IMG/VR virus record: IMGVR_UViG_3300045996_002337
Span: 285,661-349,660 of that record
Reading direction: 5' to 3' (one strand)
DNA: 64,000 nucleotides
The notes beneath the pieces are model-generated. The model saw nothing but the letters and a program-made list of their open reading frames with translations. It made no database searches and was not told the origin of the DNA. Both the position numbers and the translations under genes were made by a program. The number at the start of each line of letters is the position of its first letter. The first letter of the stretch is position 1. Of this stretch, positions 25,519 to 60,960 are shown piece by piece.

Positions 25519-25545
25519 CAGAAGTTCCCTGTTATTTTCAGTGTG

Positions 25546-25551
25546 TATTTA
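25546..25551 (-). promoter_or_regulatory. Late promoter TAAATA
   Basis: Between the terminator hairpin and paralog 2 start. Confidence 0.65.
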
Positions 25552-25553
25552 GG

Positions 25554-25581
25554 ATTCTGAACGGCTTTCGCCGTTCAGAAT
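25554..25581. terminator. Terminator hairpin after paralog 3
   Basis: ATTCTGAACGG-CTTTCG-CCGTTCAGAAT. Confidence 0.7.
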
Positions 25582-25582
25582 T

Positions 25583-28500: not shown

Positions 28501-28774
28501 AAATTCGAAGACTACCGACACCGGTAATAGTTGCAAGCGCGCCAGCGGCGAAGATGCCAACAACTCCAGCAACTGTGAATTGACTAACAACGAGATTACC
28601 AACCGCGGTAAAGTCGTTTGTTAGCACGTTGCCAGTAAGGACTTGATCTTCAGGTCCAGTTACTGCATCGGCGACCAGGGTAATTTGATCACCAGGAAGG
28701 TGGTTAACGTCCAGTACGGTGATATCACCGAATTGAATTTTACCCTCCCGGTTGTTGAATCTAAATCCGCTCAT
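25583..28774 (-). CDS. Large adhesin-like virion protein with the same architecture as 22210..25518; paralog 3
   Basis: Near-identical N-terminus M(S/P)GFRFNNREGKI, EDQVLTGNVLTND, RNDYSKRQCFN, WHPTDP, GEGRPSADGRFW. Confidence 0.7.
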   Translation of the reverse strand: MSGFRFNNREGKIQFGDITVLDVNHLPGDQITLVADAVTGPEDQVLTGNVLTNDFTAVGNLVVSQFTVAGVVGIFAAGALATITGVGSLRILATGAWTFSPAPNYRGNVPLVTYQATNGDAVNQTTLSITITPVQDAPTASTDSVTASFNSPVTFSPILNDVDPDADVLTLYEVNGEAPVEGNVINVPNGTVTIGANNVLTFTPTPGYSGTFSFPYSITDGVGQASSTITITVLPTLAANGSATTFDSIYEETFALNSTQDVITREVLVKPTVKSTSTSDFKYTDPAFGTKVFMVTDVTDTADTVGYIRNDYSKRQCFNCDSTRFVATAQNSWWHLYDANTFAHIDVPGGVNGRMPTVAADAEIVWHPTDPHKFWFNNRGLNLFFQEIDIRTGEISPLFSFEGRMPPGFQNATRLNMGGEGRPSADGRFWCLQARGSDDSYIGVITYDRETDTILDYVVTNRAIDWAGVSHSGAWAVLGGKGGIAGNTMELEAGRDITQFAGTRAYPIDAISGSVFTVLDQSGQHGDLAVDVNGRDVWVSASYSPFMDMLDGDLYFRDIETGVPYIYEGLSAYAPGGNNAMHFSGCHYGKPGWALISYNAGGTPASWRNGTIMLIELTTESPRAYRLVHHRTDSGEYWATPFATANRDLTRILFGSDFHNSGMPYPQLMIGLPSWAVPTAGTYPPTKLTDPEIGGLVSPGGTLTRTAGTYDSTPVATVTGKWQISTNSGSSWTDITGASSETYVIPGGITNGTMYRWREMAANANGFAAALSNALTVAPISAPVNLVAPSITNGRTDVLSVGNRGSWSANPTPTFTYMWQRDVAASWTDTAFTTRSALLSPAGVWRLRVSASNSEGGPIVAFSNNATISEPVFEPIPTNVVNLTAANDTSIEMIDPNWDGITSNYVIVDNMLRNGTTEGYNTGPIWLTTSGGNNQAFEVTLAAPANIGPGGNHLTIMIHTTGVSTTGYKIEIRDTQLRLYRADNFGEPAVGPLAHNVDLLTTDMTLRMTSYYGRIRAYINGSATPIIDYTDADPITGGYVGLFSYPGADSSRVRISHIAHGVS

Positions 28775-28798
28775 TTTTATCCTTCAGGTATGGTAACG

Positions 28799-31700
28799 TT
28801 ACGCAACAAGAGCCACTGCAGTCCAACCAATTGTTTTGCCCAATTCGCCGGTCACCTGAAGTACAACTGAATCTACTCCTTCTAGGGGAGTTACCGTCCA
28901 TGTATCAGAAGCAACTTCTTTAATTTCATCTGTTTGTGAAGTGGCAGAAATAATTGTAACCGTGCCACCGACATTTTTTGCTGCAAAGAAAATTCTGGCT
29001 GAGTATGCCGCACCGCTTGCAAGTTCAAATCCATTAACTTGCGCGGTGACACTAACGACCCTGTTCAGTGGCACGTCAAATGTGAGTGCTGTTGTGGGGG
29101 TCGCATCGCCGGTTGAGGCCGTTCCTGTCTTGACGGGATTATTAATCCATGTCGTGGCAAAATCGCTGTCCGTCTGTTTAACCAAGAGTTGACCAGTAGA
29201 CCCGCCAGCAGCAATACCTGGACCCGGTGGACCCTCTTCACCATCTGCACCAGCAGGACCTTGGATACCCTGAATGCCTTGGATACCCTGAATACCTTGA
29301 GGACCTGGATCGCCCTGTTCACCTTGGATACCTGGGATACCCTGAGGACCTTGCTCACCCTGTGGGCCAGTGATACCAGTAGATGCAATCCATGAAACAC
29401 CGTTAAACAGCAGAAGCGAGTTAGTTTCGGGTGATGGGACAGAAACATCAGTGAGGGCATCAAGTGTTGTTGCGCCTCCACCCCCAGAACCACCAGTTGG
29501 TGCCGCTGCGATCCACAGACCATTGTCGTATGTCAGAACGTGGCCATTTGCCGGAGTCGTTGTGAACACAACGTCATCAAGATCCACCAGATCAAGGGCG
29601 CCACCGCCTTGGGCCGCTTGAGCGACCCATGAAGTACCATTAAATGTGAGAACATCACCGAAGGTTGGGCCTACGATGCTAACATCAGTGAGCTCAGTGA
29701 GAGCATCTGGTACAGTTCGCGCGATCCATTGTCCGCCGGTATAACCGAGAAAGTTACCTTCCGCTGGTGCACCGACCGCGACGTCAGTAAGATCATTTAG
29801 CGTCTGAGCTACAATTCCTGGAACCCATGTTCCATTGTTGAAAACCAGCGCGGCACCATTTGTAGGAGCTGTCGTGGTTAGGTCAACGTCCTGCAGAGTT
29901 TCGAGGTAAAAATCTGGAAGCGGGGTGGCGGCCCAGCCTGCTTCACCATAGGCCAGGAAGGATCCAGGGCCTGGATTCGGAGCAAAGACGTCTGACAGAT
30001 CATCAAGCGACGAAGGAACAGAAACTTCAATGTGACCAGGTTCAAGTTCATTTACGACGGGGCCGGTGAACGAAAGTGTGTGCGTTGTGACAGGTGTCGC
30101 ATCATCCAGAAGAACTGTAAGACCGGCACCGCCCACCCATGAGGTGCCGTTAAATCTAAGCACGTCGCCTAGTGCAGGAGCTGAAGCATCTACGTCTGAC
30201 AGCTCATCAAGCGCCAGCGTAAATCCAGTGTTCAGCTTACCATCTAGAGCCCCTTGAAGTCCAGTGACATCTGCAATGATGTGAGTATGGGTAGTTAGCG
30301 CACGCCCATCAAGTTCACTCTGAAGATTGATAACTTCATCGATGGCATGGGTGTGACCGACGTTCGACTTACCAGCGAGAACCTGGGTAAGTGAATCACC
30401 TGTCGCAATATCACTGAGGGCCGTTTGATCTACAGAGACAAAGATCCGATCAAATGCCAACAGGCCAGTGTCACGATCAAATTTGTCGTTCAGCGCGTCC
30501 TGAAGTCCAGTTACCTCAGGGATGACGTGGTCATGATTGATAAGCGCGTAACGATCATCATGGTTGTGATTGACGAGCGCGTAGCGATCATCAAAGTTTG
30601 CATCTACATCCAACTTTCCATCAAGCAGGCCCTGTAAATCAGTGATGTCGGCCGCTGCGTGGGTGTGGCCGACATTGGACTTGCCTGTTTGGAGCGCCGA
30701 GATCAGGCCGTTGATCGTCGTGATCTGGCCAGGCACCGCTGCCACTGTAACGGCTTGGGCAGTGGTCATGTGGCCAGGTCCGGTGGCGGTTGCCGGTGGC
30801 ATGGAAATTGTTACAACACGCTCACCAATGCCGTTCAACGAATCTGTCGTTTGGACTGGCACTGAACCGGAAATAATGACGGCTTCGGCCTCGGCGGAAT
30901 AAACTTGTGGCTGTGTCTCAGCGTCGACATCAAAGACGATGGTGTTTCTGTTCTTGATGAAACCTACACGATAGGCAAGTAGACCACCAGGGCGAGATGT
31001 GGTAAGCTGGCCAGCGCTATTCGAGTACACGGCCTTACCAATGTGGCCAGACCAATCCCACTGGTCATACGTAATGTCACCACTTTGGGTTAGTACGCCA
31101 ATCTCGTTGGTTGAGAGCGCCTCTTGAATAACACCAACTGGGGTGCGTTCAAACAGGAGCGCAGGGTCTGAGCTAGCAAGCGAAACCGTATCTTCGCCTG
31201 AAAAGTAGACGAGCGACATTGCCGGAATGTTCTCGCCCGCCCGAACCGGGATAAAGGCATTTGGTGGAACAGCAAGAACGCCGGCGGTACCGACAGTTGT
31301 GCGAATTCTAACTGGAGTATCCGTGGTTAGAAATTCACCAACAGACGTACGCAGCGGACGAAGTTGCGAATCGACCATGATAAAGCCAGGATTCGAGGGC
31401 GCATTAACCCAGACCTGAGATCCAGCTGTACGAGGGAAGATCTGGCCCGCGCTACCGTTTTCAACTCGACCAGCAAACACACGAACGCGATCAATCCACT
31501 TGTTCGAAGATGTTCTCCAAACCCGCATCTTGTTTGTGTTAAGATCAAACCAGTGGAGATCATTCACCGGTGAGGTCGGTTCAACTGATGAGGTGACTGG
31601 CTCGACGGTCGTAATGCCATAAGAAACCGCCGCGGTTAGAAGGTCAATGTCCCAGTAGAGATAGTTGTCCTTGTTGGCAATGAGCGGACCCCAAGCATTC

Positions 31701-31882
31701 GGCACCGTTACATCAAACACCTGCAGGTAATCAGAACCGCCATGGGCAAAGGCTACGGTGGTGGGCGTTGGTGCTACGTTTAGAGAAACATAGCCCGATG
31801 TCGAAGAGGGCAAAAGGAACTGTGGCAGTCCGTTGACGTCTTTTTGATATGATACGAGGCCCTGACGAAAAGTGATTCTCAT
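28799..31882 (-). CDS. Long tail fibre protein with HxH repeats, LxDLxDV repeats and collagen segment
   Basis: HTHAAADITDL, HTHAIDEV, HTHIIADV; multiple LDDLSDV-type repeats; ~17 Gly-X-Y triplets. Confidence 0.8.
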   Translation of the reverse strand: MRITFRQGLVSYQKDVNGLPQFLLPSSTSGYVSLNVAPTPTTVAFAHGGSDYLQVFDVTVPNAWGPLIANKDNYLYWDIDLLTAAVSYGITTVEPVTSSVEPTSPVNDLHWFDLNTNKMRVWRTSSNKWIDRVRVFAGRVENGSAGQIFPRTAGSQVWVNAPSNPGFIMVDSQLRPLRTSVGEFLTTDTPVRIRTTVGTAGVLAVPPNAFIPVRAGENIPAMSLVYFSGEDTVSLASSDPALLFERTPVGVIQEALSTNEIGVLTQSGDITYDQWDWSGHIGKAVYSNSAGQLTTSRPGGLLAYRVGFIKNRNTIVFDVDAETQPQVYSAEAEAVIISGSVPVQTTDSLNGIGERVVTISMPPATATGPGHMTTAQAVTVAAVPGQITTINGLISALQTGKSNVGHTHAAADITDLQGLLDGKLDVDANFDDRYALVNHNHDDRYALINHDHVIPEVTGLQDALNDKFDRDTGLLAFDRIFVSVDQTALSDIATGDSLTQVLAGKSNVGHTHAIDEVINLQSELDGRALTTHTHIIADVTGLQGALDGKLNTGFTLALDELSDVDASAPALGDVLRFNGTSWVGGAGLTVLLDDATPVTTHTLSFTGPVVNELEPGHIEVSVPSSLDDLSDVFAPNPGPGSFLAYGEAGWAATPLPDFYLETLQDVDLTTTAPTNGAALVFNNGTWVPGIVAQTLNDLTDVAVGAPAEGNFLGYTGGQWIARTVPDALTELTDVSIVGPTFGDVLTFNGTSWVAQAAQGGGALDLVDLDDVVFTTTPANGHVLTYDNGLWIAAAPTGGSGGGGATTLDALTDVSVPSPETNSLLLFNGVSWIASTGITGPQGEQGPQGIPGIQGEQGDPGPQGIQGIQGIQGIQGPAGADGEEGPPGPGIAAGGSTGQLLVKQTDSDFATTWINNPVKTGTASTGDATPTTALTFDVPLNRVVSVTAQVNGFELASGAAYSARIFFAAKNVGGTVTIISATSQTDEIKEVASDTWTVTPLEGVDSVVLQVTGELGKTIGWTAVALVA
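29219..29372 (-). repeat. Collagen-like (Gly-X-Y)n repeat
   Basis: GPQGEQGPQGIPGIQGEQGDPGPQGIQGIQGIQGIQGPAGADGEEGPPGPG. Confidence 0.9.
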
Positions 31883-45145: not shown

Positions 45146-45805
45146 CTAGTTCAACCAATGGAGCAAAACTTGTGACTTTACAACATCGAAGAACATTTTG
45201 ACACGGGCGAAGAAACCAAGAAGAATACCGTACTTCTTCTCTTTGATCGTCTGAGAGAGCCCCTTAAAAACCTTGTACTTGTAGCCACGCCCAACATGGT
45301 AGGCGTAGAAGTTCAAAGCCGCCTCGATCATGAACCTGCTCTTGTAACGATCAGGTATGGAGTTCCAGAAAGATCGCGTTACTGCTCGCTCACCGCCCAA
45401 CAGTGGAATGACACGAAGAAGAAACCGCAGCATGTAGATCGCGCGGTTGCGCATAGCGATCATCATGTCAACCTCGCCGTCAACAACAGGGCCAAGTGTC
45501 TGTGTGATGATCGTGTGGGTTAAACCGTGAACGTCCGCATCACAGAAGAAAATGAACTCTGCTTCGGACTCGCGCACCCCTCGATCCATTGCTTGACCTT
45601 TCCCAAGGTTCAATGGTTGCTGAATGACACGAACTGGAAATTGATTGGCTACTGCGACTGTATCGTCGGTCGAGCCGTCATCTACAACGATGATCTCATC
45701 AAATGGAAATGAACACAAAACACGAAGGACCTCAGCGATTCGAGGTCCTTCGTTGTGGGCGGCAACTACAGCCGCAACCTTACGGTGCGATGATTTTGAA
45801 CCCAT
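45146..45805 (-). CDS. Glycosyltransferase family 2
   Basis: VVAAHNEG, IIVVDDGSTDDT, NLGKGQAM, FFCDAD, LGGERA; likely start MGSKSS. Confidence 0.88.
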   Translation of the reverse strand: MGSKSSHRKVAAVVAAHNEGPRIAEVLRVLCSFPFDEIIVVDDGSTDDTVAVANQFPVRVIQQPLNLGKGQAMDRGVRESEAEFIFFCDADVHGLTHTIITQTLGPVVDGEVDMMIAMRNRAIYMLRFLLRVIPLLGGERAVTRSFWNSIPDRYKSRFMIEAALNFYAYHVGRGYKYKVFKGLSQTIKEKKYGILLGFFARVKMFFDVVKSQVLLHWLN

Positions 45806-47024
45806 CCACTTCAGGCCCCAGCCACGGGGTTTCCTGCTGCATGTAGATCTGGTGGACACGGAAAGCCGGCAGCTCCTTGTCTCCACGCGTCTTCTGACGG
45901 GACTTCGCCGTTTCTTCCGAAACGTAGAACTCGATGGAGACAACCTTGTAACCACGCTGCTTCGCGGCTTCGATCCATGGCGAGCGGCCCTTTCGACCCT
46001 GGTTCATTCGATCCAAGATGATGTCGTCGCTCGAGTCCAACGCCTGCTGGTACCTCATCTTCGCGTACGCGTCGTATTTCGACCCCGGGTTCAAGTGGCA
46101 GAACTTCCATGCGGCGTCGTACTTCTCCGCAGCCGTCTGAACTTCGTACGTCTTTTCCATGAGCAGCCCTGCGTATTCCATGCGGTACGCATCTTCAGAG
46201 ACCACCGTGGTCCGGCTCATCTCACCTTGGTTCTTGATCCACGTGGACTTGCCCGCACCAGACACACCGCACAGCACAAACAGCGTACGCTGCCGTTCAC
46301 GCAACAGACGTTCGCCGGTTTCTTTACTGTAATCGGCAACGCCATTAACGATCTCAAACGGGGGCGCCCGCTTCTTGCTAAACATACGAGCACCAGCGTC
46401 GATTTGCTTGTACGGCAAATGGCGGAACTCGGCGATCCAGTCCTCGACGTTCTTCAGCTTCGTTTCGTGGTCGTCACTGATCCGACCTGCGGCATCCGAG
46501 CGCAGCATGTCCCAGTACGATTCCTCATCATCGCCCATAGTCAAACCAACCGCCTGACGCAGGTTGTTGCGCTTCGTCGGGTTCTTCAGTCCATACGGCA
46601 GGTGATGCTCGATCATGAACTTGATGGTGCGAACGTCGTTCCAGCCGTAGCCTTGCGCAAAGAACATCTCACGCAACTCCGCTTGATCGCACATGAATGA
46701 GAGAAACTCGTTGGCAGAAACAGGCTCATGCCCGGCATAACGCCGGTACATCACGCCAGGCTCGTCCTTCTTCTCGAGCACCTCTTCAGCTTCAGGCTTG
46801 CCAAAGTCATGAAAGAGCAGTGCCATCAGTGCCAGCATCCGCTCCCGCTCAGTGCGATGGGCGGAGAACTTGTTCATGTAGGCCTCAATCGTCATGAGGG
46901 TGTGGACAGCCACATTGGCTTCACGGTGCCAAGGAGAGTTCTCGACGACGGACTCCATCACCTTCCAGTGCGGGGTCTCCATCACCTTGATGAGGAATTC
47001 AGCAAAAAAATCGGTGGTTTTCAT
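45780..47024 (-). CDS. HD phosphohydrolase fused to P-loop polynucleotide-kinase-like (AAA_33) domain
   Basis: SPWHREANVAVHT, LLFHDFGKP, HH, RSDAAGR; LCGVSGAGKSTW, VSEDAYR, ILDRMN; start MKTTDFF. Confidence 0.82.
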   Translation of the reverse strand: MKTTDFFAEFLIKVMETPHWKVMESVVENSPWHREANVAVHTLMTIEAYMNKFSAHRTERERMLALMALLFHDFGKPEAEEVLEKKDEPGVMYRRYAGHEPVSANEFLSFMCDQAELREMFFAQGYGWNDVRTIKFMIEHHLPYGLKNPTKRNNLRQAVGLTMGDDEESYWDMLRSDAAGRISDDHETKLKNVEDWIAEFRHLPYKQIDAGARMFSKKRAPPFEIVNGVADYSKETGERLLRERQRTLFVLCGVSGAGKSTWIKNQGEMSRTTVVSEDAYRMEYAGLLMEKTYEVQTAAEKYDAAWKFCHLNPGSKYDAYAKMRYQQALDSSDDIILDRMNQGRKGRSPWIEAAKQRGYKVVSIEFYVSEETAKSRQKTRGDKELPAFRVHQIYMQQETPWLGPEVDGFKIIAP

Positions 47025-47184
47025 AACCTGATTATAACCCCTTGGTGGCAAGCGTGTTAAATTTTTGCCAAGAAAATGGTAAGTGAGACACCAATGGTAA
47101 CTACAAGTGCCCAAAGAGCGAGCATCAGCCTGAACGCGGGCCAAATAGTTCGCTCACTTTGATATGGTAAGGAGTACGTCTGCC

Positions 47185-51394: not shown

Positions 51395-52927
51395 TCACAT
51401 CATGAACGGTACCGGCTCGTCTCCATACTGGTCACCCTCATTGGGTGCCACGTACTCGTTCACCTGCTTAAACGCGGTGTCGTTGTACTCAGAGAGACGC
51501 TTGAGCAAACGAATGACAATGATGGTTGCCATCACGCAGTCAGAAGTTGCTCCCGGCTTGTGATCATAAGAACCACCTCGAGCCACAAAGTTCTTCAGTT
51601 CGTCGAGTAAGACCGTTGATTTGATCTGAAGGCCACCATTGATTTTTTCAACCAGTGATTTGAGCTGCAAGCAGGCAAGCACCTTTGTTTTACCTGACGT
51701 GAAGACTCCAAGCTTATCTGAAGATGGTTGATCACAATAGAGCTCGGCGTGTTCAGGTTGCTTTTCATCATTTTGGTAGAGTGCTGACATGGCCTCACCA
51801 ATACCGTTTCGCTCGAATGTCCAAAGAACTTCGGCGCGTCCTCTACCAATTGGCGCCGAAAGTTTCTCGAGTATCCACTTTAGCTTTGCGTAGAGCAGGG
51901 GGATGTTGATATCGTTTGATCGCCACTCAGCCACCTGCTCGAGTGATGGAAACTCAAAGACCTCAATGACTGAGAAGTCATTGCCTGAGCCTGTGGCCGG
52001 GTCAACCCCAACCAGATATGTACGGCCTTGACCACCTAGCTCTTCTTCAGGTTTCCAAAACTTAAACCCGAGGTCCTCATAGAGATGATGCGTGGGCGCA
52101 ATTTGGATCAGCTTCATTGAGTTGATCAGCAACGCATCTGATGATAAGAATTCGCACCCGACTTCTTGCCGCGTAGCAAGGGGCCCGATCTGTCCAACCA
52201 TGTCATCCCAGTACTGATCATCCCGCTCGGGGTGTTCTTTCCAGTGCACTTGAAATGGCTTGTACACATTTGTGCCAGACATTGCTCCACGCCACAACGA
52301 GGCAAAGAGATCCGTGTCTCCGTTTGGGGTTGAGGAAATGATAGCAGAACCACCAGTAGACAGGGTAGGCGACAGCGAGTTCCACATCTGCTGCTGAATG
52401 CGTGGGTTAATAAACGCCAACTCGTCAAGATACAGCTTCGAGATGGACAGGCCTCGACCAGTCTTGTCAGTCGTTGCTTCACAAACAACTCGTGATCCGT
52501 TGTCAAGGTCAATCTTGTGCATGTTGTAGTACTTCAAACCTGGCTTGATCCAGCTTGGAAGTTCTTCATACGCGAGCTTAACGCGACCGGCAATTTCAAG
52601 GGCGTGAGAACCGTTCTTCGAGGCGATCAGCACGGTGGCATCGTCGTTGAAGAGCGCGTACCAAAGCAGGTACATGGCAGCCGTGACCGTCTTACCGCAC
52701 TGACGCGGTTGCAGCGTGATCGTAAAACGGTTGGAGTGAATGTGACGAACGAACCGTTCCTGGTAGTCAAACATGTTGAAGGGAACGATACCGCGGGTTG
52801 GGTGGTTCACCTTCACATAGGTTCGAATGAAGTACACTGGATCCCGCTTGCAACGCGCAAGCTCTTGGATCATGAACGGCGTATACTCGTCTGTTGCGTA
52901 CGCCTTCTTAAGCTGCGGGTTCTTCAT
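51395..52927 (-). CDS. terL: Terminase large subunit (T4 gp17-like)
   Basis: PRQCGKT, LYLDELAF, SSTPNG, GCEFL, nuclease YLVGVDPATG, SDCVMA. Confidence 0.95.
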   Translation of the reverse strand: MKNPQLKKAYATDEYTPFMIQELARCKRDPVYFIRTYVKVNHPTRGIVPFNMFDYQERFVRHIHSNRFTITLQPRQCGKTVTAAMYLLWYALFNDDATVLIASKNGSHALEIAGRVKLAYEELPSWIKPGLKYYNMHKIDLDNGSRVVCEATTDKTGRGLSISKLYLDELAFINPRIQQQMWNSLSPTLSTGGSAIISSTPNGDTDLFASLWRGAMSGTNVYKPFQVHWKEHPERDDQYWDDMVGQIGPLATRQEVGCEFLSSDALLINSMKLIQIAPTHHLYEDLGFKFWKPEEELGGQGRTYLVGVDPATGSGNDFSVIEVFEFPSLEQVAEWRSNDINIPLLYAKLKWILEKLSAPIGRGRAEVLWTFERNGIGEAMSALYQNDEKQPEHAELYCDQPSSDKLGVFTSGKTKVLACLQLKSLVEKINGGLQIKSTVLLDELKNFVARGGSYDHKPGATSDCVMATIIVIRLLKRLSEYNDTAFKQVNEYVAPNEGDQYGDEPVPFMM

Positions 52928-53706
52928 AGAAATTCACACTGATATTGTTCGCGCCACGCGTAGTCGCTAATAGACTGCTTGATTAAATCCTTGACTGCTT
53001 GATCCCACTGCACGTCGGCAAAGTCAACTTTAAATGGCGCAAACAGATTGGCGCCTTTGTTAGCTTCTGTCCAAATCTTTGCAAACATGTTATGCTTCCC
53101 ATTGGGCGTTGAGTGGATGGAAAATGCGACACCACATGACGTGAGGACTGGAAGCATCAACATTGCAATATTCTGCTGATCGCTTGGTGACAAAAAAGCA
53201 AAATTATCAAGATGCAACCGTGAAATTGCCATGCCCCTAACGGCCCTCGTGCTGGCAGCCCTAAAGAGAATTCGCGAACTATTTTCAAAGACGATTTCAT
53301 CTTTAGAGGAATAGCGAACCTTAGGCATGAGAAAAGTTGGCAACTTACTTACAGCAAAGTTTGCGATTTCAGAGGCCGAGGCGGCCATTGAATTGGTAAC
53401 TGTACCAAAAACCTCACTTTTACAATCATGGAAGATTGCTTCCCATAGCATAAATGCAATTGCTACGGTCGTCATGCCCACCTGTCTTGGCGCCATTGAA
53501 ACAACCATATCATTGCGCAGCATGTGGCGAATGTAGTCTTCTTGGTATGGGTGCAATGGGAGCGGCATGGCACCCATCTTTGGGTGCAAGTACTGAAAGT
53601 AGTTCTTTATGAAGTAGATTGGATCTTTGGCACAGCGAAAAATTTCTTCAACTTGCTCACGCGACTGGTCAGGGGCGCGGCCCCGCTTGGAGATAATGGT
53701 CTTCAT
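52924..53706 (-). CDS. TerL ATPase-domain paralog with degenerate Walker motifs, no nuclease domain
   Basis: PRQVGMTT (K to M), LHLDNFAF (E to N), HSTPNG, ends QYQCEFL. Confidence 0.85.
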   Translation of the reverse strand: MKTIISKRGRAPDQSREQVEEIFRCAKDPIYFIKNYFQYLHPKMGAMPLPLHPYQEDYIRHMLRNDMVVSMAPRQVGMTTVAIAFMLWEAIFHDCKSEVFGTVTNSMAASASEIANFAVSKLPTFLMPKVRYSSKDEIVFENSSRILFRAASTRAVRGMAISRLHLDNFAFLSPSDQQNIAMLMLPVLTSCGVAFSIHSTPNGKHNMFAKIWTEANKGANLFAPFKVDFADVQWDQAVKDLIKQSISDYAWREQYQCEFL

Positions 53707-54284
53707 TGATTGTCCTCGAAGATGAAGTTCTTAATTGCGCCCACAGTGTGTTCATGTAAGAGAACTTCGAAGTGATTGGCTTTGACTTCTACCTTCTTCC
53801 CGAATTTTAGTGCGCGTTGACTTGATACAGCAACGACGCTGTCATTCGGTTCCGGTGATGTGGGCAGGTGCCCTCCAGTAGAAATGATACTGAGAGTCGG
53901 AGTAGTCAACATGAGATCACAGCATCGTCTAACATGCGGGCCGCGTGGAATGATATCTCCCAGCACGGCTAAGCTGCCCGGGATCCAGCGCAAAGCTGCA
54001 GCGGCCCGTGATCCATTTAGTGGAGATGATATCGTTACAAGCTTTGTGATTCGTTCAGGTTCATCAGCTGCCACTAAGGTCGCGATAACCCCGCCAAGTG
54101 AATGACCGACGAGGATCAATTCGCCAGCTGGTAACTGCGCGCGAACCTGTTCTATCGAAACTGATAGGGGCTGATGCGACAAATAATCCACCATGATCGG
54201 TGAATGCTGGGGCAGCTTGTTGACGATGTATCCAAAGGAACGGTGACTGGAATTCAATCCATGCACGAAGACAATTTGTTTCAT
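53703..54284 (-). CDS. Alpha/beta hydrolase (lipase/esterase)
   Basis: VFVHGL, LVGHSLGG, ISSPLNGS, NDSVV, ANHFEVL; late promoter at 54303-54308. Confidence 0.85.
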   Translation of the reverse strand: MKQIVFVHGLNSSHRSFGYIVNKLPQHSPIMVDYLSHQPLSVSIEQVRAQLPAGELILVGHSLGGVIATLVAADEPERITKLVTISSPLNGSRAAAALRWIPGSLAVLGDIIPRGPHVRRCCDLMLTTPTLSIISTGGHLPTSPEPNDSVVAVSSQRALKFGKKVEVKANHFEVLLHEHTVGAIKNFIFEDNQ

Positions 54285-54311: not shown

Positions 54312-54911
54312 TCACCCGGCGATCAAATCTTCGTAATCCACGTCCTTGCGTACAGGAACGATAATAACGGAGTCACACAGCAGCGCGATTTCGGCGCCAG
54401 AGGAAATGGCTTTTGCAAGGTTGTCGTCATGCCAGGTGATCTCGTCAAGCACCTTCGCGGCCACACCTTCAGCCTCTTCCTCTTTACTAACTCGCATCAA
54501 GTTCTCAATGGTGCGGGCCCAACGCATGGTATCATAGATGGCTTCACCGTTGTGTTCACCCCACACAAATTTGAAGTCACCGACCGGAAAGACGTAGTGA
54601 AGCTGCCCGTAAAGACGGGCAGCGTTTTTATCGCCCGTCGCGAACAGGCCTTCAGATCGAACCTTGACGCCAAACTTCTTTTGAAAGTATGTGTCAAGAA
54701 GCCCATGAACGAACGGAGTAGAATCGCGTGGTTTGCGGTCCTTGCGAACTGTCACCTCACGGGCTCCTTTTACTAGAGAGGCAAAAGGGCCGCCGTAACC
54801 ACGATAGAGTGGTCGATTACCTGCTTGCTCAAGAAAAGGGGCGCATTTCTGACGGATATCCAGCTTTGAATCACCCGTGAGAAAATCCTTAAACGTTCGT
54901 AGACTCGTCAC
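54312..54911 (-). CDS. Putative capsid-internal protein, ADP-ribosyltransferase-like paralog A
   Basis: N-terminal TFKDFL; PLYRG, R..RxS, RSEGLFAT, YG..YVFP, late AEIAL; ART fold is inference. Confidence 0.55.
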   Translation of the reverse strand: MTSLRTFKDFLTGDSKLDIRQKCAPFLEQAGNRPLYRGYGGPFASLVKGAREVTVRKDRKPRDSTPFVHGLLDTYFQKKFGVKVRSEGLFATGDKNAARLYGQLHYVFPVGDFKFVWGEHNGEAIYDTMRWARTIENLMRVSKEEEAEGVAAKVLDEITWHDDNLAKAISSGAEIALLCDSVIIVPVRKDVDYEDLIAG

Positions 54912-55033
54912 TTTTTCTTTGTCCTGTAGCGGGTCTCAAGCACTCCAGCCCATTCAAGGAACTTGTTGCCTAAGTATGTTGTTGCGGCTGCCGCTGCCGC
55001 GCCCGCAATGATCTTTCCAATGAGGCGCAGCAT
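54908..55033 (-). CDS. 41-aa membrane peptide (MLRLIGKIIAGAAAAAATTYLG...)
   Basis: Manual translation; GTGA overlap with next gene. Confidence 0.45.
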   Translation of the reverse strand: MLRLIGKIIAGAAAAAATTYLGNKFLEWAGVLETRYRTKKK

Positions 55034-55036
55034 GGC

Positions 55037-55252
55037 TTACTTCTTTTCGTTTTGTTCTTTGAGGAGGGCGTTAATCCTGCCAATCAGGTCATTAACACGA
55101 ACCTCAGTTGTATTTTTAAGGCCTTGAGCCATTTGTTTAGCATCGTTCACACGAACATCAAGTGGCTTTTGCTCAAGAGCGCGTTTAACATGCTTGGTTG
55201 CAAAGTAACCAGCAACTGCTGCGCCAGCAGCGATCAACATTTTCTTCATCAT
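55037..55252 (-). CDS. Small membrane-anchored protein
   Basis: LIAAGAAVAGYFA anchor; AAGGAG SD. Confidence 0.6.
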   Translation of the reverse strand: MMKKMLIAAGAAVAGYFATKHVKRALEQKPLDVRVNDAKQMAQGLKNTTEVRVNDLIGRINALLKEQNEKK

Positions 55253-55313
55253 CGTTTCTCCTTAAGAGAGGTTAACTTCCGCGTTGTGCAGAATGTGCAT
55301 CTTCGTTATATCT

Positions 55314-56099
55314 TCAAGCCTTGAACATCTTATGGTTGCCATCAGGTGCTTCAACGCGAACATATTTAACGTTCTCGTTGGTATAAAAGATGACTACCCA
55401 TTGTGCATCAGCGGCTTTAATAAGTTCACGCTTTAGCTGCTTGCCCTTCTGGATTACATTTTCTGCTTCGGTAGTACCAACAAGCTTGAGTCGATCGACT
55501 GGCACCTGAAGAAGTTCAGCAGCTTGCCCCATCGCGCGCGTTTCAGTGGCACTCACCCGCTCTGAAAGCAGGTCGATGCCCACGAGCTGCTTTTGAAACT
55601 CAAGTGCAAAAGCTTCATTCCACATCTTGATGATTGGCTTTGGTGGCGACTGTGTGGTCCAAACTGGAATGCGATACGCAGTGGCACCTGGATTTGAAAG
55701 AAGAAGCTTAACGTGCTTGGCTGCAATCTTTTGAGCCAATTTGATTCGTTTGGCACCCTCGCCCTTGATGCCTAATTCCTTCATTCGCTTTGCGATATTT
55801 GTCGTAATCGCAAGATTCTTTAGAGTGGAATAGAGCTGGCCAATCCAGTGATTGCCGTTCATACCCATGCCACCTGGCCTGAAAGGACCAGGACGGTACC
55901 ACCCACTTCCAACTGGGGGTGGCGTGACAGGTGGAATTTCGGGCACGTCAGTTGGAGTTCCACCATCACCAGGCGATGACTCGCCACCATCGCCACCATC
56001 CTCTTCTGAGATCAGTAGGAGCGGCAAAAGGGCCTCGTAAACTTCAAGGTTTTTGCCCTCGAGAAGTGGCTTAGCAGTCAGCAGTTCTTGTACCAGCAT
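55314..56099 (-). CDS. Hypothetical protein, possible internal head protein
   Basis: MLVQELL...LLEG N-terminus; acidic Gly/Pro linker; late promoter at 56123-56128. Confidence 0.6.
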   Translation of the reverse strand: MLVQELLTAKPLLEGKNLEVYEALLPLLLISEEDGGDGGESSPGDGGTPTDVPEIPPVTPPPVGSGWYRPGPFRPGGMGMNGNHWIGQLYSTLKNLAITTNIAKRMKELGIKGEGAKRIKLAQKIAAKHVKLLLSNPGATAYRIPVWTTQSPPKPIIKMWNEAFALEFQKQLVGIDLLSERVSATETRAMGQAAELLQVPVDRLKLVGTTEAENVIQKGKQLKRELIKAADAQWVVIFYTNENVKYVRVEAPDGNHKMFKA

Positions 56100-56129
56100 G
56101 TTGTTATCCGTTGTTAAGGATCTATTTAC

Positions 56130-56864
56130 TTAGGTTTTGTACCAACCCTCAACCTTTTTGTTGAGGGTTTCCATGTCAAAAATTTCTGGCACGAGATACT
56201 TTTCTTTGGTATCTTCAAGGTGCTTTAGCATGCGTTGGCCAACAGGGTTCTGCACAGGAGAGTCATAGAAGTTTGTAACTTCCTTGAAGATCTTCAGCAT
56301 TGCAGCGTCGTCAAGTTCGCCCGGGTTGTTGTTCACTTCCTTGAAGAACTCAAATTTGCCTTTAAAGTACGCCTTATTGGCCCGAGAAACTTCATGCACC
56401 TTGTCAATGAACTCAGGGTTCACTTCACGGCCAATCTCTTCACCGCGCTTCTTTGCGCGGGCCTGGGCTACTTCAAGCTCTGTATCAACAAATACCATGC
56501 CGACGTCATAGCCAAGTGATTCAAGAATGCCTGCCCGGCCGAGGATGTTTGATGCATCGTTGGACGTACCATCGACGAACAGCGGCAGCATGCCGTTCAA
56601 ATAACCAGCGAGCGCGTTCTTTGTTAGGGGGCGGGTGCGGTCGCGGAAGAACGACTTCCATGTTTCGTCATTCGATGGCATGTCGAATTTCTTTGAAAGA
56701 AACTCAGTTGCCTTATCGGTGTTGACAACCTTCGGTGAAATTGGCCCTTGCAGCTTTGAGACAGTGTATGACTTACCTGCGCCCGGAATGCCAACAACGA
56801 AAACCGCTTTCAAAATGCCGCGGTCGTTGATGCTTTCGTCTAGAAATTGTTTGAACGTAATCAT
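56130..56864 (-). CDS. P-loop kinase (zeta-toxin/AAA_33-like) with capsid-targeting-like N-terminus
   Basis: MITFKQFLDES; AVFVVGIPGAGKS, VNTD, LFVDGT, ARAKKR. Confidence 0.75.
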   Translation of the reverse strand: MITFKQFLDESINDRGILKAVFVVGIPGAGKSYTVSKLQGPISPKVVNTDKATEFLSKKFDMPSNDETWKSFFRDRTRPLTKNALAGYLNGMLPLFVDGTSNDASNILGRAGILESLGYDVGMVFVDTELEVAQARAKKRGEEIGREVNPEFIDKVHEVSRANKAYFKGKFEFFKEVNNNPGELDDAAMLKIFKEVTNFYDSPVQNPVGQRMLKHLEDTKEKYLVPEIFDMETLNKKVEGWYKT

Positions 56865-57643
56865 GATAGTGGTTTGATAAATTCGCTGAATTGAATTGCA
56901 GGCACTGAAAGGTATTTACCGCTAAACCAGACCTCGTGCTGCTTTCCATCAAACTTGAAAGAGGATGGTGTCTCGAGCGCGACGCCCATACGATCGGGCT
57001 GAAAGATGTCAGGATATTCAGCGTGAAAATCAAGTAACCAGGCACCGCTAATTTTGCCAATGCGCTTGAATTCGGGCTTCGTTTGGTCAATCTTTCCATC
57101 GACCTCCAGACTGTTGAGAATCTGTTCCCACAGATTCTTCAAGTCTGCTGACAATGTTTGGGGCCCGTCTATGTGGAGAACGTCTTCAGCAATTGTTCGA
57201 ATGTAATAGGAAATGGTGCCGAGATTATTTGTTCGGTGTTCCGCAGCTTTAAATGGTCTAATGAAGTTAAAATCTACCTCTTTGGTAATCGCAAGCTTCG
57301 TCCCATTCACCGGAAAGATGGCATAAGTGTTATCTTCTGTCATTTCTGTGACTTCTGTGTCCATCGTAGTAGAGCAGAAGATTGACCTGTCGCGCTCTGG
57401 AAAATCGTTCCATGCTGGGAACGAGAAGATCCATTTGTGCATGGCGCCATTGCCAGACCGGCTGCGCGGGCGCACGCGCTCTGAAGAGTCGCGAACTCTA
57501 ATTGGTTCGTTCTTGCTAGCCGCCCGCCATAATGGGCGTGTCGGGGTCTTCCAATCGGAGCAGTGCTTCTTAAAGAACTCAAGCGCCTCCTCAGCAGAAA
57601 GGGTCCGATCTTCTTCAAGTAAAAATTCCTTGAATGTGATCAC
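56861..57643 (-). CDS. Putative capsid-internal protein, ADP-ribosyltransferase-like paralog B
   Basis: MITFKEFLLEE; PLWRA, RSRS, RDRSIFCST, YAIFP, HEVW. Confidence 0.55.
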   Translation of the reverse strand: MITFKEFLLEEDRTLSAEEALEFFKKHCSDWKTPTRPLWRAASKNEPIRVRDSSERVRPRSRSGNGAMHKWIFSFPAWNDFPERDRSIFCSTTMDTEVTEMTEDNTYAIFPVNGTKLAITKEVDFNFIRPFKAAEHRTNNLGTISYYIRTIAEDVLHIDGPQTLSADLKNLWEQILNSLEVDGKIDQTKPEFKRIGKISGAWLLDFHAEYPDIFQPDRMGVALETPSSFKFDGKQHEVWFSGKYLSVPAIQFSEFIKPLS

Positions 57644-58359
57644 TTCATTTCACCCATAAGTTGCTTCCACACATCCAGACGAAGCGCGACACACTTTCCT
57701 GAAACCCAGCACTCATGCGGTCCGTTCGGTGGGCGAGCGGTTGTAGTCAAGCGTAGGCGCATGTTTGTCTCAGAGTAGGCTTCTTGCAGTGCCTTTGCGA
57801 CGTCTAGCCCGCCAAATATATGAGAGAACAGCTCGCTATTAGGGTCTTCATAGTCTTGCATTGTTTCTTCAATGCCATTGACCATGTCCTCAAATGAGTA
57901 GTCTGGAATGTCAGCATCGCTAAAAATTTCATTCCATGATGAAAGTGATTGACTCGTGCTTTTGCCAATTTTAATTCGAGTGTGCCAAATATCTTCATCA
58001 GAAGTCACGCCAATCTTGACACCATCAAAAGGGATGATCGCGTAAACCTTACCATAGCTTAGTGCGTAGTCTTGATTGTCTGGGCTAGCCATGATGATGG
58101 ATTTGCTTCGAGCTGGGTAACCCTGTGATGGCAAAAATTCATCCATCACAACAGTGTAATGGTTCGTTGTGTTTGCAGAGCTGCGCCCACCCAACTCGCC
58201 CTGGATAATGTACGCCTCTTCTTCGGTCTTTCGGGAGCCACGCCAGAATGGACGCCTAATGTCCATGTCCTTGCAGTTCGCCTCAATGAGCTCGCGCGCC
58301 TTTTCGACGCTGATGTCTTGACGGTGTTTGGCTTCTCTTAAGAAGTCTTTGAATCTCAT
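57640..58359 (-). CDS. Putative capsid-internal protein, ADP-ribosyltransferase-like paralog C
   Basis: Real start MRFKDFLREA; PFWRG, RSS, RSKSIIMAS, YGKVYAIIP, HECW. Confidence 0.55.
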   Translation of the reverse strand: MRFKDFLREAKHRQDISVEKARELIEANCKDMDIRRPFWRGSRKTEEEAYIIQGELGGRSSANTTNHYTVVMDEFLPSQGYPARSKSIIMASPDNQDYALSYGKVYAIIPFDGVKIGVTSDEDIWHTRIKIGKSTSQSLSSWNEIFSDADIPDYSFEDMVNGIEETMQDYEDPNSELFSHIFGGLDVAKALQEAYSETNMRLRLTTTARPPNGPHECWVSGKCVALRLDVWKQLMGEMK

Positions 58360-58360
58360 A

Positions 58361-58627
58361 TTAGCTCGGCATGCTATAGCCTGCAGGAAGCAGGCTAGGG
58401 TTGTTGTTGGCAGCTGCGATGGCAACCTTCTTAGCGGCTGTTAGGGTTCTAGTAATTCTTCGGCCCTTTGATTTCATCCGCAGATCAAATCCCCCGCCTT
58501 TTGACGTAAGCTTGGAGATAGACCCAACTTGTTGATCGCCCGATTTGACGAACCACTTGAACTGATCATCAGGATCGGGCACAAATGTGAGCTTGGCCTC
58601 GCTCTCAAACAATTCTTGAACTCTCAT
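58361..58627 (-). CDS. Small putative internal head protein
   Basis: MRVQELFESE N-terminus. Confidence 0.55.
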   Translation of the reverse strand: MRVQELFESEAKLTFVPDPDDQFKWFVKSGDQQVGSISKLTSKGGGFDLRMKSKGRRITRTLTAAKKVAIAAANNNPSLLPAGYSMPS

Positions 58628-59097
58628 TTAACTTCCTTGACTTCAGCGTCAATGCTGATCATTCTCATGATTTCATCGCGGCTGGCAACCACGACGTTGT
58701 TTTGCGTTTTATTTGCAAATGGTACAAAGGCAGCGTTGCGCTTGCGTTCGCCTTTGACCTTTGCGCGAGTTGCTGCGGCGCTGAGGGCAATGTTCAGGTA
58801 GTTAGCTGCCACTTCGGCGTTTCTAGCTGCATACCGTGGCTCAATGATCTCGGTGTAGGCGGTCTGCTGGTTGAAGGCGTCGATCGCAGCTTGATAGACG
58901 GTATCAATCTTACCGTCAATCTCCTTGTCTTCCTCATCCTTCTCAGGCGGAGCTTCTTCACCTGACGCCATTTCAGCAAGTTCACCTTCAGTGATCTGCT
59001 CGTACTCATCTTTGTCTTCGTCGAGGCGAGTAGCCGGTGTATTGAACAGCTCGTCAAGAGGATTCGAAAGCATTGGGTTGTTTGATTTGATCGTCAT
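58624..59097 (-). CDS. Probable terminase small subunit (T4 gp16-like)
   Basis: Acidic N-terminus, EPR....EVAANYL helix pair, C-terminal QNNVVVASRDEIMRMI; sits in the packaging block. Confidence 0.5.
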   Translation of the reverse strand: MTIKSNNPMLSNPLDELFNTPATRLDEDKDEYEQITEGELAEMASGEEAPPEKDEEDKEIDGKIDTVYQAAIDAFNQQTAYTEIIEPRYAARNAEVAANYLNIALSAAATRAKVKGERKRNAAFVPFANKTQNNVVVASRDEIMRMISIDAEVKEVK

Positions 59098-59555
59098 TTT
59101 TTCTTACTCCTCTTTGGAACTTGTCGGAACATGCTCTTCTCCGTGATTACGCGGAACACGGCTCCTTGAGATTCTGCGAAGATGCTTGCCGCCTTCCACT
59201 TCGCTTGGTTTACGGCATACGCCATTTTGTCTCGCTCTGAGGAACCTGCCGTTAAAACAGATTCCTTCATAGGTTTAACCTCTACGATTTCCTTCTTGAG
59301 GTTTCCTAGATTGTCACGGTACATGATAATGAAGTCGGGAAAGTACCGTGAAATTTTAGGGCGACCATTTTCATCAATCTTGATTGGGTTGACGTATGGA
59401 ATGGCAAGCTCTTCAGAGCCCCAGCGCAGCACCGCGTTGTTCGTATCTAGCCACTGCATGAACCGTAATTCCCAAGATGAACGGAACATTATCTTGTTGA
59501 CATTGCCAACATACTTCTGGGGGTTCTTGGGAATGAATCTGCCGCCGTGCGCCAT
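59094..59555 (-). CDS. Head completion nuclease (T4 gp4-like, TnsA-type)
   Basis: GRFIPKNPQKYVG, FRSSWELRFM, WGSEELAIPY, RYFPDF, VEVKP, NQAKW. Confidence 0.9.
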   Translation of the reverse strand: MAHGGRFIPKNPQKYVGNVNKIMFRSSWELRFMQWLDTNNAVLRWGSEELAIPYVNPIKIDENGRPKISRYFPDFIIMYRDNLGNLKKEIVEVKPMKESVLTAGSSERDKMAYAVNQAKWKAASIFAESQGAVFRVITEKSMFRQVPKRSKKK

Positions 59556-59556
59556 G

Positions 59557-60960
59557 TTAATCCTCACCCCAAGCCGGTTTGGAATCTGGCACCCATGTTA
59601 CATGTCCCGTAGAACTTGTGACAAGTTGACCTGTTTCCTCTGCTGCTTCTGCGTGTCGGTTATTTACTACCGGCGGGGCTGATGGAAGATCAGCCGATCG
59701 AGTTACGCCAGAAACTGCGGTTGGACCACCTTCAGCGCTGTCAATGACGGTCGCGCTGTACGCGCGCACGGCCCCTTGATTGACCGCTGTCGACATACCA
59801 GAGGCCAGGTCGCGTGCGGCTGCGCCAATCACACCACCTAAAATGTTTGATGCCTGTGAGCCAATAAGCGAAGCAAAGCGGCCCTTACCTGCAACTGATT
59901 GCACGGCGCGGCTAATTGCGGTAGATGAAATTGACTGTGCCGCCCGGCCCACTTGATTTGTGATGATGTTAGCGAAGGGGCTTCCGCCACCAGCTTGCGT
60001 CTGCGCACTTTGATTTACACTCATGTCAACAGGGGCTCCGCCAACTCCAGGGACCGCGATGCTATAGGCTGGTCCATCCATTGTTGTCATTGCACCGACA
60101 TCGACAATTTCCATCCAGTCGTAGTCGAACTGCATGGTCATCAAGGAAACATCAGATGTTTCATGGTTAAGGTCATCAAGATCGAAGGACACAATGCGGG
60201 CATTCAAGAAGTCATAAATGACTTCCTTTGCAGAACCGCCTAATTGTGAACCCGGGTCAACGAACATCTGTTTCACGCGAATGGCGGAGATGACATTACC
60301 AACTTGACTGTCTGTTACCCCACGAATGGCGTTGTCGCCAGCTTTTGGATCATTTGGCGCCGAGAACATCATACCGTTGCCGGTTGAGAGGGTGTTAGGG
60401 TCTGGTGGTCTGGTGGTGCCTTCACGCAGAAGCTGACGTCGGGTAATTGGTGACTGCAGCATCATCAAGGCGCGGAAGAAGTTCAGCACTCGGTTGCCAG
60501 TATCATCCATGAACGTGATTGTCAATTCGCGGTGGCGAATACGCTTTAGCACCTTCGTGCGAAAGTTGTACATGTTGACGTCGTCTTCATACTCGAAGTC
60601 AATCTTGGGACGGTCAACTGACTTGACCATGAATGTAAAGTCGTTGGCCTTGGCACCACCGAAGATCGTAGGGAAGGCAGCCACTGCTTCAGGCGTAAAG
60701 ACAAATTCCACCTTGAATAGAAATTTGAGCTTTGGTCTGTAACTTGTTCCGCCTGCTAAAGCGTGTGCATACGAGCTGGCGTAAAAGGAACCATCACCGC
60801 GATTAAATGGTACTTGACCACCGGGTAGGGGCTGAGGTTGACCTAGAGCAGGTCCTAGTACTCCGCGGCTGAATGTTTCAACCGCAGCACCAAATTTGTC
60901 TGATGCTTCTTTTTCAAGAGCGATCTTTGTGCTGTCGAGGAAGGGTTTTAGGTTTGCCAT
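59557..60960 (-). CDS. Tail-tube-fold baseplate protein (gp48/gp54/gp19-like)
   Basis: PKLKFLFKVEF, VKSVDRPKIDFE, NMYN, ELTITFMDD, FDLDDLNHE; late promoter at 60985-60990. Confidence 0.7.
   Translation of the reverse strand: MANLKPFLDSTKIALEKEASDKFGAAVETFSRGVLGPALGQPQPLPGGQVPFNRGDGSFYASSYAHALAGGTSYRPKLKFLFKVEFVFTPEAVAAFPTIFGGAKANDFTFMVKSVDRPKIDFEYEDDVNMYNFRTKVLKRIRHRELTITFMDDTGNRVLNFFRALMMLQSPITRRQLLREGTTRPPDPNTLSTGNGMMFSAPNDPKAGDNAIRGVTDSQVGNVISAIRVKQMFVDPGSQLGGSAKEVIYDFLNARIVSFDLDDLNHETSDVSLMTMQFDYDWMEIVDVGAMTTMDGPAYSIAVPGVGGAPVDMSVNQSAQTQAGGGSPFANIITNQVGRAAQSISSTAISRAVQSVAGKGRFASLIGSQASNILGGVIGAAARDLASGMSTAVNQGAVRAYSATVIDSAEGGPTAVSGVTRSADLPSAPPVVNNRHAEAAEETGQLVTSSTGHVTWVPDSKPAWGED

Follow-up and report, generated by a model that had tools for sequence, protein, structure and literature searches.

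Three diverged paralogs with a predicted ADP-ribosyltransferase-like fold and T4-type leaders, encoded beside the terminase genes of an uncultured T4-like jumbo phage

That phages carry ADP-ribosyltransferases (ARTs) in their heads is an established idea, exemplified by T4 Alt, MuF fusions and polyvalent proteins, and packaging has been argued from genomics for myoviruses that encode such enzymes beside the terminase and portal genes (PMC9503650). Alt enters the prohead core, loses its N-terminal propeptide to the gp21 protease, is ejected with the DNA and modifies host proteins early in infection (PMC9026906, PMC9503650). The internal proteins of T4 bear a capsid-targeting sequence, M-K-T-Y-Q-E-F-I-A-E, in which mutations of residues 4 and 7 affect targeting and those of residues 8 and 10 affect cleavage, an Asp at position 10 blocking cleavage while leaving targeting intact (PMC9026906). 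ARTs themselves are recognized by [RH]-G-[ST] on strand 1, S-x-S or Tyr on strand 2, and x-x-E at the front edge of strand 5 (PMC7955679). Here, we describe three genes, A, B and C, from a window of 64,000 nucleotides (positions 285,661 to 349,660 of IMG/VR record IMGVR_UViG_3300045996_002337), the source of which is an uncultured T4-like jumbo phage. We tentatively read their products as head-packaged, injected ART-like effectors that ADP-ribosylate host targets early in infection, although we hold this composite reading with slightly more doubt than confidence and grade its parts separately below.

A first-pass annotation of the window had presented the three open reading frames (ORFs) as divergent paralogs with an R-S/T-E ART-like signature and as candidates for delivery by the virion. 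The ORFs lie on the minus strand at the positions given there, every motif listed for them is found in the order described, and their kinship is borne out. B and C match over their full length by BLASTP (E 2e-10), and A, which is too diverged for pairwise BLAST (E 0.07-0.14; 0.073 against C), could be joined to C by comparing profiles of 28 A-family and 33 C-family homologs (HHalign probability 96.5%, E 8e-10). All three match phrog_11975, B and C match phrog_12810 as well, and a family hidden Markov model (HMM) run over the window retrieves exactly A, B and C. Judged from these sequence comparisons, the three are true diverged paralogs. The ORF of C extends to a TTG at 58425, but the ATG at 58359 was chosen because homologs begin with M-R-F-K-D-F-L and a start at the TTG would run into the gene upstream. 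The greater length of B and C relative to A comes from additional helical segments between strands 4 and 5 (residues 139-194 in the model of C, as against 129-155 and 165-170 in that of A), which agrees with the helical insert ascribed to both in the earlier description.

A, B, C and a Zeta-type kinase that is encoded next to B and is not a member of the family share the start M-x-(T)-F-K-[DEQ]-F-L (full leaders in Table 1). B and the kinase have F4, F7, L8 and E10, as does the T4 leader in kind, and so combine its targeting and processing positions; C follows the same pattern in a form one residue shorter, ending in L-R-E, and A shows the targeting part only. A search of the window with a strict leader pattern found these four ORFs and no other. 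The same four rank highest among 1,496 candidate starts scored with a leader HMM that was trained solely on proteins of other phages (C 24.1 bits, B 22.0, kinase 15.9 with an E-value of 7e-4, and A 11.4). Nearly all of about 200 family members retrieved begin with such a leader, and one member from a related contig, starting with M-K-T-F-K-Q-F-I-A-E, is identical to T4 at 7 of 10 positions. The resemblance to T4 IPI, IPII and IPIII extends over a leader of about 10 residues with aromatic residues at 4 and 7, an aliphatic one at 8 and Glu at 10, and it includes gene content that varies at a single locus. Unlike the proteins described here, which are acidic to neutral, have strongly conserved putative catalytic residues and include a kinase, the T4 internal proteins are small, highly basic and devoid of an enzyme fold.

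Evidence for the presence of such proteins in virions comes from Agrobacterium phage Atu_ph07, in which eleven consecutive genes encode family members according to the HMM, including one of 490 aa with tandem domains and one of 778 aa in which an ART-like domain is joined to a kinase. Their computed masses (87.07, 56.49, 29.65, 30.93, 30.16, 29.20, 31.19, 29.55, 29.96, 29.61 and 41.40 kDa) coincide, within rounding of 0.01 kDa, with those of gp53-gp63 in the published table of virion proteins identified by electrospray ionization tandem mass spectrometry (PMC6102473). In that study, gp53-gp63 were detected in purified virions with 3-31 unique peptides each, and the authors named them hypothetical proteins (PMC6102473). 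Virion presence is thereby documented for the Atu_ph07 homologs only, which share about 20-30% identity with A, B and C. The virion study of Ralstonia phage RsoM2USA covered the ten most abundant bands and is silent on the three paralogs of that phage. A gp21-type prohead protease is present in both relatives (Atu_ph07 gp204, a homolog of T4 gp21, and RsoM2USA ORF379). The suggestion of virion delivery has in this way gained independent support from T4-type leaders and from eleven homologs detected by mass spectrometry, and we consider that A, B and C are very probably packaged in the head. The eleven Atu_ph07 paralogs have a leader that is different yet uniform, M-[RK]-W-[EHDQN]-[QD]-L-[TNI]-E, so variation in the leader seems to track the phage, and presumably its protease or core, and not the cargo.

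The fold, which the first-pass annotation had left unconfirmed, was addressed with AlphaFold2 models of A and C built from different alignments. Both models are confident (predicted local distance difference test, pLDDT, of 92.2 for C and 91.7 for A; predicted template modelling score, pTM, of 0.86 for each), and both best match ART-fold proteins. In a structure comparison with 48,161 chains, the top three matches of either model are BC2332 (PDB identifier 2aua), Arr and diphtheria toxin. Lower ranks are taken by cholix toxin/exotoxin A, tankyrases and other PARPs, AvrPphF, a Tpt1-type entry, CteC and DarT; the Tpt1-type entry is the unnamed 9ld3, counted as a Tpt1-type ART solely by its ADP-ribose ligand and alignment range. 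Ranks 1-19 of the C model all belong to the ADP-ribosylation superfamily, with alignments covering residues ~15-230, so that the model matches solved ART structures along the entire domain; ARTs constitute well under 1% of the chains compared. BC2332 is classified in SCOP as d.166.1.6, its structure has previously been noted as mimicking the diphtheria-toxin site, and DUF2441 belongs to the Pfam ART clan. In the ESM Atlas, the nearest named neighbours are likewise DUF2441, ART-PolyVal, DRAT and Tse2-ART. BC2332/DUF2441 (PF10386), the closest of these named families, resembles the present one in that its cluster is 94% viral, but none of 61 aligned members has a Pfam DUF2441 hit at E<=10 and DUF2441 is itself without an assigned function.

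To judge from alignment ranges only, R40 of C and R37 of A would lie at or beside the strand-1 His of Arr and diphtheria toxin, the second and third matches of both models. These two belong to the H-Y-[ED] clade, whereas strand 1 of A, B and C has an Arg; they share no sequence similarity with the family, and their biology is that of antibiotic resistance and secreted toxins. The kinship with the R-S-E clade proposed earlier is accordingly not reflected in the structural neighbours, which are BC2332, Arr and diphtheria toxin and not C3, VIP2 or cholera-type toxins.

Could the resemblance to ARTs be fortuitous and reflect no more than a common alpha/beta arrangement, with the family representing a new fold or some other, non-NAD+ enzyme class (NAD+, nicotinamide adenine dinucleotide)? 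The negative results of several searches are what such a reading would expect. Foldseek, which had also been proposed for the fold, found no known fold with both models against the PDB, with A against Swiss-Prot or with C against AFDB clusters, returning only uncharacterized proteins, and in BFVD it matched only uncharacterized jumbo-phage proteins. A, B and C and all 61 aligned members (33 and 28) gave nothing in Pfam even at E<=10, nor did 10 long members; PADLOC gave no match; searches against PDB sequences and profiles (phmmer, hmmsearch) returned noise only; and the PHROG families of A, B and C are labelled 'unknown function'. HHalign against T4 Mod proteins, described below, was negative too. 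Against coincidence, however, stand the same three top hits from two models with independent alignments, the first 19 ranks of C filled by one superfamily that makes up so small a part of the chains, an independent language-model and structure search that also leads to ART families, and the location of the conserved residues on the ART hallmark strands. We therefore regard coincidence as very improbable and conclude from the models that the family probably has an ART fold.

The three proteins share, in order, C...P-[LF]-[YW]-R-[GA] (residues 34-38 in A, 37-42 in B and 37-42 in C), an Arg-rich 'RxS' loop (56-64, 56-64 and 57-69), R-x-x-[SG]-h-h-x-[ST] (84-94, 83-93 and 83-92), (YG)-x-x-Y-x-h-h-P (101-111, 105-114 and 102-113) and a late h-E-h-[WA] (172-178, 234-243 and 213-222). 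The first of these supplies the strand-1 hallmark, namely R40-G41-S42 in C, R37-G38 in A (strand 36-39) and R40-A41 in B. The last supplies the acidic residue of strand 5, since E216 of C, E237 of B and E174 of A start the predicted penultimate strand and the residue is kept in all three subfamilies. On strand 2, S85-K-S87 of C stands at the start of the strand at 88-91 (S85 conserved in 88% and S87 in 84%), and the end of the strand reads F-C-S-T-T in B-like proteins, has T92 in A and is A-N in most C-like proteins. The F-C-S-T-T of the B-like proteins reads like the classical F-x-S-T-S. Among 196 family representatives (C numbering), R40 is found in 97%, G41 in 96%, R59 in 98%, and R84 and P110 in 100%; E216 is found in 85%, a further 12% being A-like rows shifted by one column. 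Within the family of C itself, C29, R40-G41, R59, S61, N66, Y68, D73, P82, R84, I89, P110, N143, E216, W218 and G221 are invariant. When 11 B-like proteins of four phages were aligned on their own, the invariant positions were R40, R58, P82, R84, S87, P111, D124, E237 and W239.

The R-S/T-E signature of the first-pass annotation thus holds for the strand-1 Arg and the strand-5 Glu, which are near-invariant, whereas the S/T is retained in B-like and A-like proteins and replaced by A-N in most C-like ones. The 'RxS' motifs are not the S/T motif of an ART; they contain the family-specific invariant arginines R59 and R84, which lie within or after an insert of ~30 residues that separates strand 1 from strand 2 and is absent from ModA and ModB. 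[QE]-x-E occurs in B (Q-H-E237) and in one of ten aligned relatives only, the others having a single Glu. Of the three, B retains the most canonical ART-like motifs (W-R40-A, F-C-S91-T-T and Q-H-E237), and an R-S-E-type site is plausible for the family, and above all for B, as far as sequence can tell.

T4 ModA and ModB (PF26816), which are R-S-E ARTs of about 200 residues, offer a comparison for this layout. After N-terminal helices, they have P-L-W-R72-G (ModA 69-73) or L-Y-R73-G (ModB 71-74), followed by a strand of the form h-h-S-x-S/T-T-S (V-S-A-S and F-T-T-S) and, late in the protein, E-Q-E with [VW]-M-I-P-x-G. The strand-1 Arg of the A/B/C family sits in P-L-[WY]-R-G, the P-L-W-R-G form of which is identical to ModA 69-73. 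The counterparts in B, P-L-W-R-A, F-C-S-T-T and Q-H-E-V-W-F-S-G-K, come in the same order and have the same flavour, the late E-x-E-h-M-I-P-x-G resembling H-E-V-W-F-S-G-K. In contrast to the Mod proteins, the A/B/C family has the conserved insert of ~30 residues with its two extra invariant arginines, and A and C have a single acidic residue before strand 5; moreover, the Mod proteins are early and not packaged. When the family was compared by HHalign with ModA, ModB and a Mod alignment of seven sequences (a search for ModB homologs yielded only 6), probabilities were 5-11%, over the helix and the strand-1 R-G region only. Homology to Mod is not claimed, as the probability does not exceed 11% and the strand-1 R-G region alone is aligned.

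On the reading that we tentatively favour, A, B and C would be made late, alongside the head and packaging genes, and the leader of ~10 residues would bring each protein into the prohead core. A gp21-type protease would cleave B, C and the kinase directly behind the L-x-E Glu, and A may remain uncut. The mature proteins would be retained in the filled head and then ejected into the host with the DNA. There, the strand-1 Arg would hold NAD+ and the strand-5 Glu would activate it, so that ADP-ribose could be transferred to host targets at time zero, as by Alt; several paralogs might answer to multiple or fast-evolving targets. NAD+-dependent catalysis of some kind is a prediction that we favour by a small measure. 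For this phage, we infer packaging and cleavage, NAD+ use, transferase activity and the nature of the targets alike. With Alt, A, B and C share an origin among late morphogenesis genes, an ART-like fold, a cleavable-looking leader and, by way of homologs, detection in virions. They differ from it in having no detectable sequence similarity to Alt/VIP2 (no Pfam hit), in being much smaller (22-30 kDa), in occurring in arrays of 3-11 paralogs and in having a leader of the internal-protein (IPIII) type.

Several observations weigh against this reading. No gene for a gp21-type protease is found in the 64-kb window, and virion content is known from relatives only. In A, the leader contains the aromatic pair without the Glu on which cleavage depends. 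The isoelectric points (pI) of A, B and C are 5.2-6.9, mildly acidic to neutral and unlike those of the basic T4 internal proteins. The C subfamily does not conserve the S/T of strand 2, and neither A nor C has [QE]-x-E. No sequence method ties the family to any ART family (Pfam, PDB profiles, PADLOC and HHalign against Mod, with the low values given above).

A leader and virion presence would suffice for an internal protein, and A, B and C may be inert components of the head, the ART-like scaffold serving as a binder or decoy, perhaps in the manner of T4 IPI*, which inhibits a host defence protein stoichiometrically, or as material for the core or for the packing of DNA. T4-like phages are known to have hypervariable loci for internal proteins (PMC9026906), neither the canonical S-T-S nor the E-x-E motif is complete here, and inactive ART-like domains exist, with the PARP13 and TASOR pseudo-PARP domains among the structural matches. 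Yet R40, R59, R84, P110 and E216 are 97-100% conserved across proteins that are 20-30% identical, as is usual for active sites; A, B and C lack a basic character; and the fusion with a kinase that has an intact P-loop suggests enzymatic teamwork. Active-site-like conservation and consistent structural hits make both this reading and that of a coincidental fold less likely, and we judge inert head proteins improbable.

The kinase leads to a further alternative. In Atu_ph07 gp53 (778 aa), an ART-like domain at residues 29-238 is fused to a Zeta_toxin kinase at residues 261-387; the P-loop of this fused kinase is intact. For the kinase encoded next to B, no informative relative was found in the PDB. 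The shared leader on a protein from outside the family, together with the gp53 fusion, suggests that the Zeta-type kinase is packaged in the head as well. The packaged ART-fold enzymes and their co-packaged kinase might then act on nucleotides or nucleic-acid ends instead of proteins, for example on NAD+-derived immune signals, NAD+, or RNA/DNA termini, and so be injected as a kit for counter-defence or repair. Among the nearest structures are Arr (a small-molecule ART), Tpt1 and DarT, the invariant R40, R59 and R84 suggest a phosphate-rich ligand, and a kinase with its own leader is a conserved neighbour here and in two related contigs. Zeta-family kinases act on UDP-N-acetylglucosamine, and AvrRxo1 on NAD+. 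Phage-packaged enzymes directed against NAD+/ADP-ribose signals have also been proposed in general terms (PMC9503650). On the other hand, most members stand alone and far exceed the kinases in number, with 6-11 paralogs per single kinase, and the P-L-W-R-G and E-h-h-h-x-G-K patterns resemble those of the protein-modifying ModA and ModB. We rate action on such non-protein substrates as rather unlikely, but the trio of invariant arginines, the structural proximity of Arr, Tpt1 and DarT, and a kinase that is both fused and linked to the domain keep it in play.

A more far-reaching proposal, which we find unlikely to a still greater degree, takes the family as a new ART-fold clade (R...R...R...P...E), the T4 leader as a general address label and the gp4-terminase block as a swappable cargo cassette. 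The cassette would comprise the ART-like paralogs, the Zeta-type kinase and small basic proteins, and its products would jointly eliminate or alter nucleic-acid ends, or host immune signals that are built on nucleotides or derived from NAD+, in the first seconds after injection, instead of ADP-ribosylating RNA polymerase.

Searching 1.84 billion representatives with the family profile yielded 9,318 clusters (at 50% identity) with E<=1e-3, of which 6,894 have E<=1e-10, and the matching ESM Atlas clusters are about 95-100% viral. T4-like jumbo phages have 3-11 copies per genome. We found no account of the family, its leader, its arrays or its kinase partner in the literature searched, although it may coincide with a profile-defined family, such as 'p0068-like'. 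A family of more than 9,000 clusters at 50% identity is almost purely viral, and its virion members have been detected once without being recognized. If its members are active, they would form a major unexplored set of injected effectors, the leader would offer an easy sequence criterion by which to predict the proteins that uncultured T4-like jumbo phages eject, and the conserved partnership with a Zeta-type kinase would be a testable lead to new early-infection chemistry. The best hit of the family profile, P0062, is a protein of 2,645 aa in which the domain occurs five times; it has no match in Pfam and may either be of the polyvalent type or consist of several gene calls fused together.

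The window belongs to a contig of 349,660 bp. Among isolates, large-terminase identity is highest to Ralstonia phage RsoM2USA (46.6%), followed by Xanthomonas phage XacN1 (42%) and the PA5oct group (37%); a megablast search of phage genomes with the locus as query gave no match. All genes around the three paralogs run on the minus strand (Table 1). Between the gp4-like gene and the terminase, 8 of 12 junctions are 4-nt overlaps, including that of B with the kinase gene, and the remaining gaps measure 1-61 nt, so the block looks like one unit co-expressed with morphogenesis genes. Promoter and terminator scans and a search for the T4 late-promoter motif TATAAATA gave no signal above chance near the cluster, and the case for a late operon accordingly rests on gene overlaps and neighbours only.

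Table 1. Genes and sequence features of the region between the gp4-like and terminase genes, in window coordinates
Feature	Position	Strand	Remarks
gp4-like head completion protein (T4 gp4)	59094..59567	-	phrog_218 4.3e-44, PF08722; upstream border of the cassette
157-aa acidic ORF	58624-59097	-	
88-aa basic ORF	58361..58627	-	pI 10.0; leader variant M-R-V-Q-E-L-F-E-S-E
Paralog C, 239 aa	57640..58359	-	ATG start at 58359; leader M-R-F-K-D-F-L-R-E
C, predicted capsid-targeting segment, codons 1-9	58333..58359	-	top leader HMM score in the window
C, strand-1 motif P-F-W-R40-G-S	58234..58251	-	predicted strand 38-42
C, strand-5 motif G-P-H-E216-C-W-V-S-G-K	57694..57723	-	front edge of predicted strand 216-219
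Paralog B, 260 aa	56861..57643	-	GTG start; leader M-I-T-F-K-E-F-L-L-E
B, predicted capsid-targeting and propeptide segment, codons 1-10	57614..57643	-	cleavage expected after Glu10
B, strand-1 equivalent	57518-57535	-	
B, strand-5 equivalent	56915-56944	-	E237
Zeta-toxin/AAA_33 P-loop kinase, 244 aa	56130..56864	-	Pfam PF06414 2.9e-12; phrog_12810 positions 261-462; leader M-I-T-F-K-Q-F-L-D-E
261-aa protein, function unassigned	55314..56099	-	leader-like start M-L-V-Q-E-L-L
Two tiny ORFs, 41 and 71 aa	54908-55252	-	pI about 10; Ala/Gly-rich hydrophobic N-termini; directly upstream of A
Paralog A, 199 aa	54312..54911	-	GTG start; minimal form of the ART-like domain; leader M-T-S-L-R-T-F-K-D-F-L
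A, strand-1 equivalent	54798-54812	-	
A, strand-5 equivalent	54378-54398	-	E174; strand 174-178
Small alpha/beta hydrolase (lipase/esterase type)	53703-54284	-	without leader; between A and terminase
Large terminase, first gene (260 aa)	52924-53706	-	two-gene terminase; downstream border of the cassette
Large terminase, second gene (510 aa)	51395-52927	-	

The order of the cassette is kept in two related contigs, L003 and L005 (one of them, of 143 kb, is a phage contig from ENA, and the other, of 51.7 kb, belongs to an Acinetobacter sp. assembly), which have the gp4-like gene at the same position, followed by the array, the Zeta-type kinase, a protein of ~180-254 aa of unassigned function, an A-like gene, in some cases the hydrolase, and the split terminase. 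Each contig has seven family members, and the kinase of each has a leader. In RsoM2USA, three tandem members stand between the neck and sheath-stabilizer genes.

Among the smaller neighbours, the 88-aa ORF resembles a small basic T4 internal protein in predicted size, charge and leader, and it is without an equivalent at the same position in L003 or L005. The 261-aa protein has a Pro/Gly-rich stretch and no match to a Pfam or PHROG family; its positional equivalents, of 254 aa in L003 and 180 aa in L005, start with M-K-I-D-E-L-L and M-K-L-Q-E-I-I. It was considered as a counterpart of the C-terminal third of the Atu_ph07 fusion and set aside, as no similarity was found. The leader variant of these two ORFs occurs in true family members also, P0131 and P0200 matching that of the 88-aa ORF. 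The 41-aa and 71-aa ORFs may be membrane peptides or non-genes.

The alpha/beta hydrolase is kept at the same spot in L003. The 260-aa piece of the terminase is ATPase-like (Terminase_6N) and overlaps the complete 510-aa terminase by 4 nt; two gp17 matches are also present in Atu_ph07, and an additional 254-aa gene separates the two terminase pieces of L005. Further from the cassette, three consecutive ORFs of 1102, 1063 and 1027 aa lie at 22210-31882 on the minus strand. An ORF at 45780-47144, on the same strand and with a probable start at 47024, encodes a protein of roughly 414 aa, in which an N-terminal domain with an HD-like F-H-D-F-G-K-P motif (recognized by eye) precedes a C-terminal AAA_33/polynucleotide-kinase-like domain (4.1e-18). 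Its likely N-terminus, M-K-T-T-D-F-F-A-E-F-L, bears a faint resemblance to the leader, scoring only 3.7 bits.

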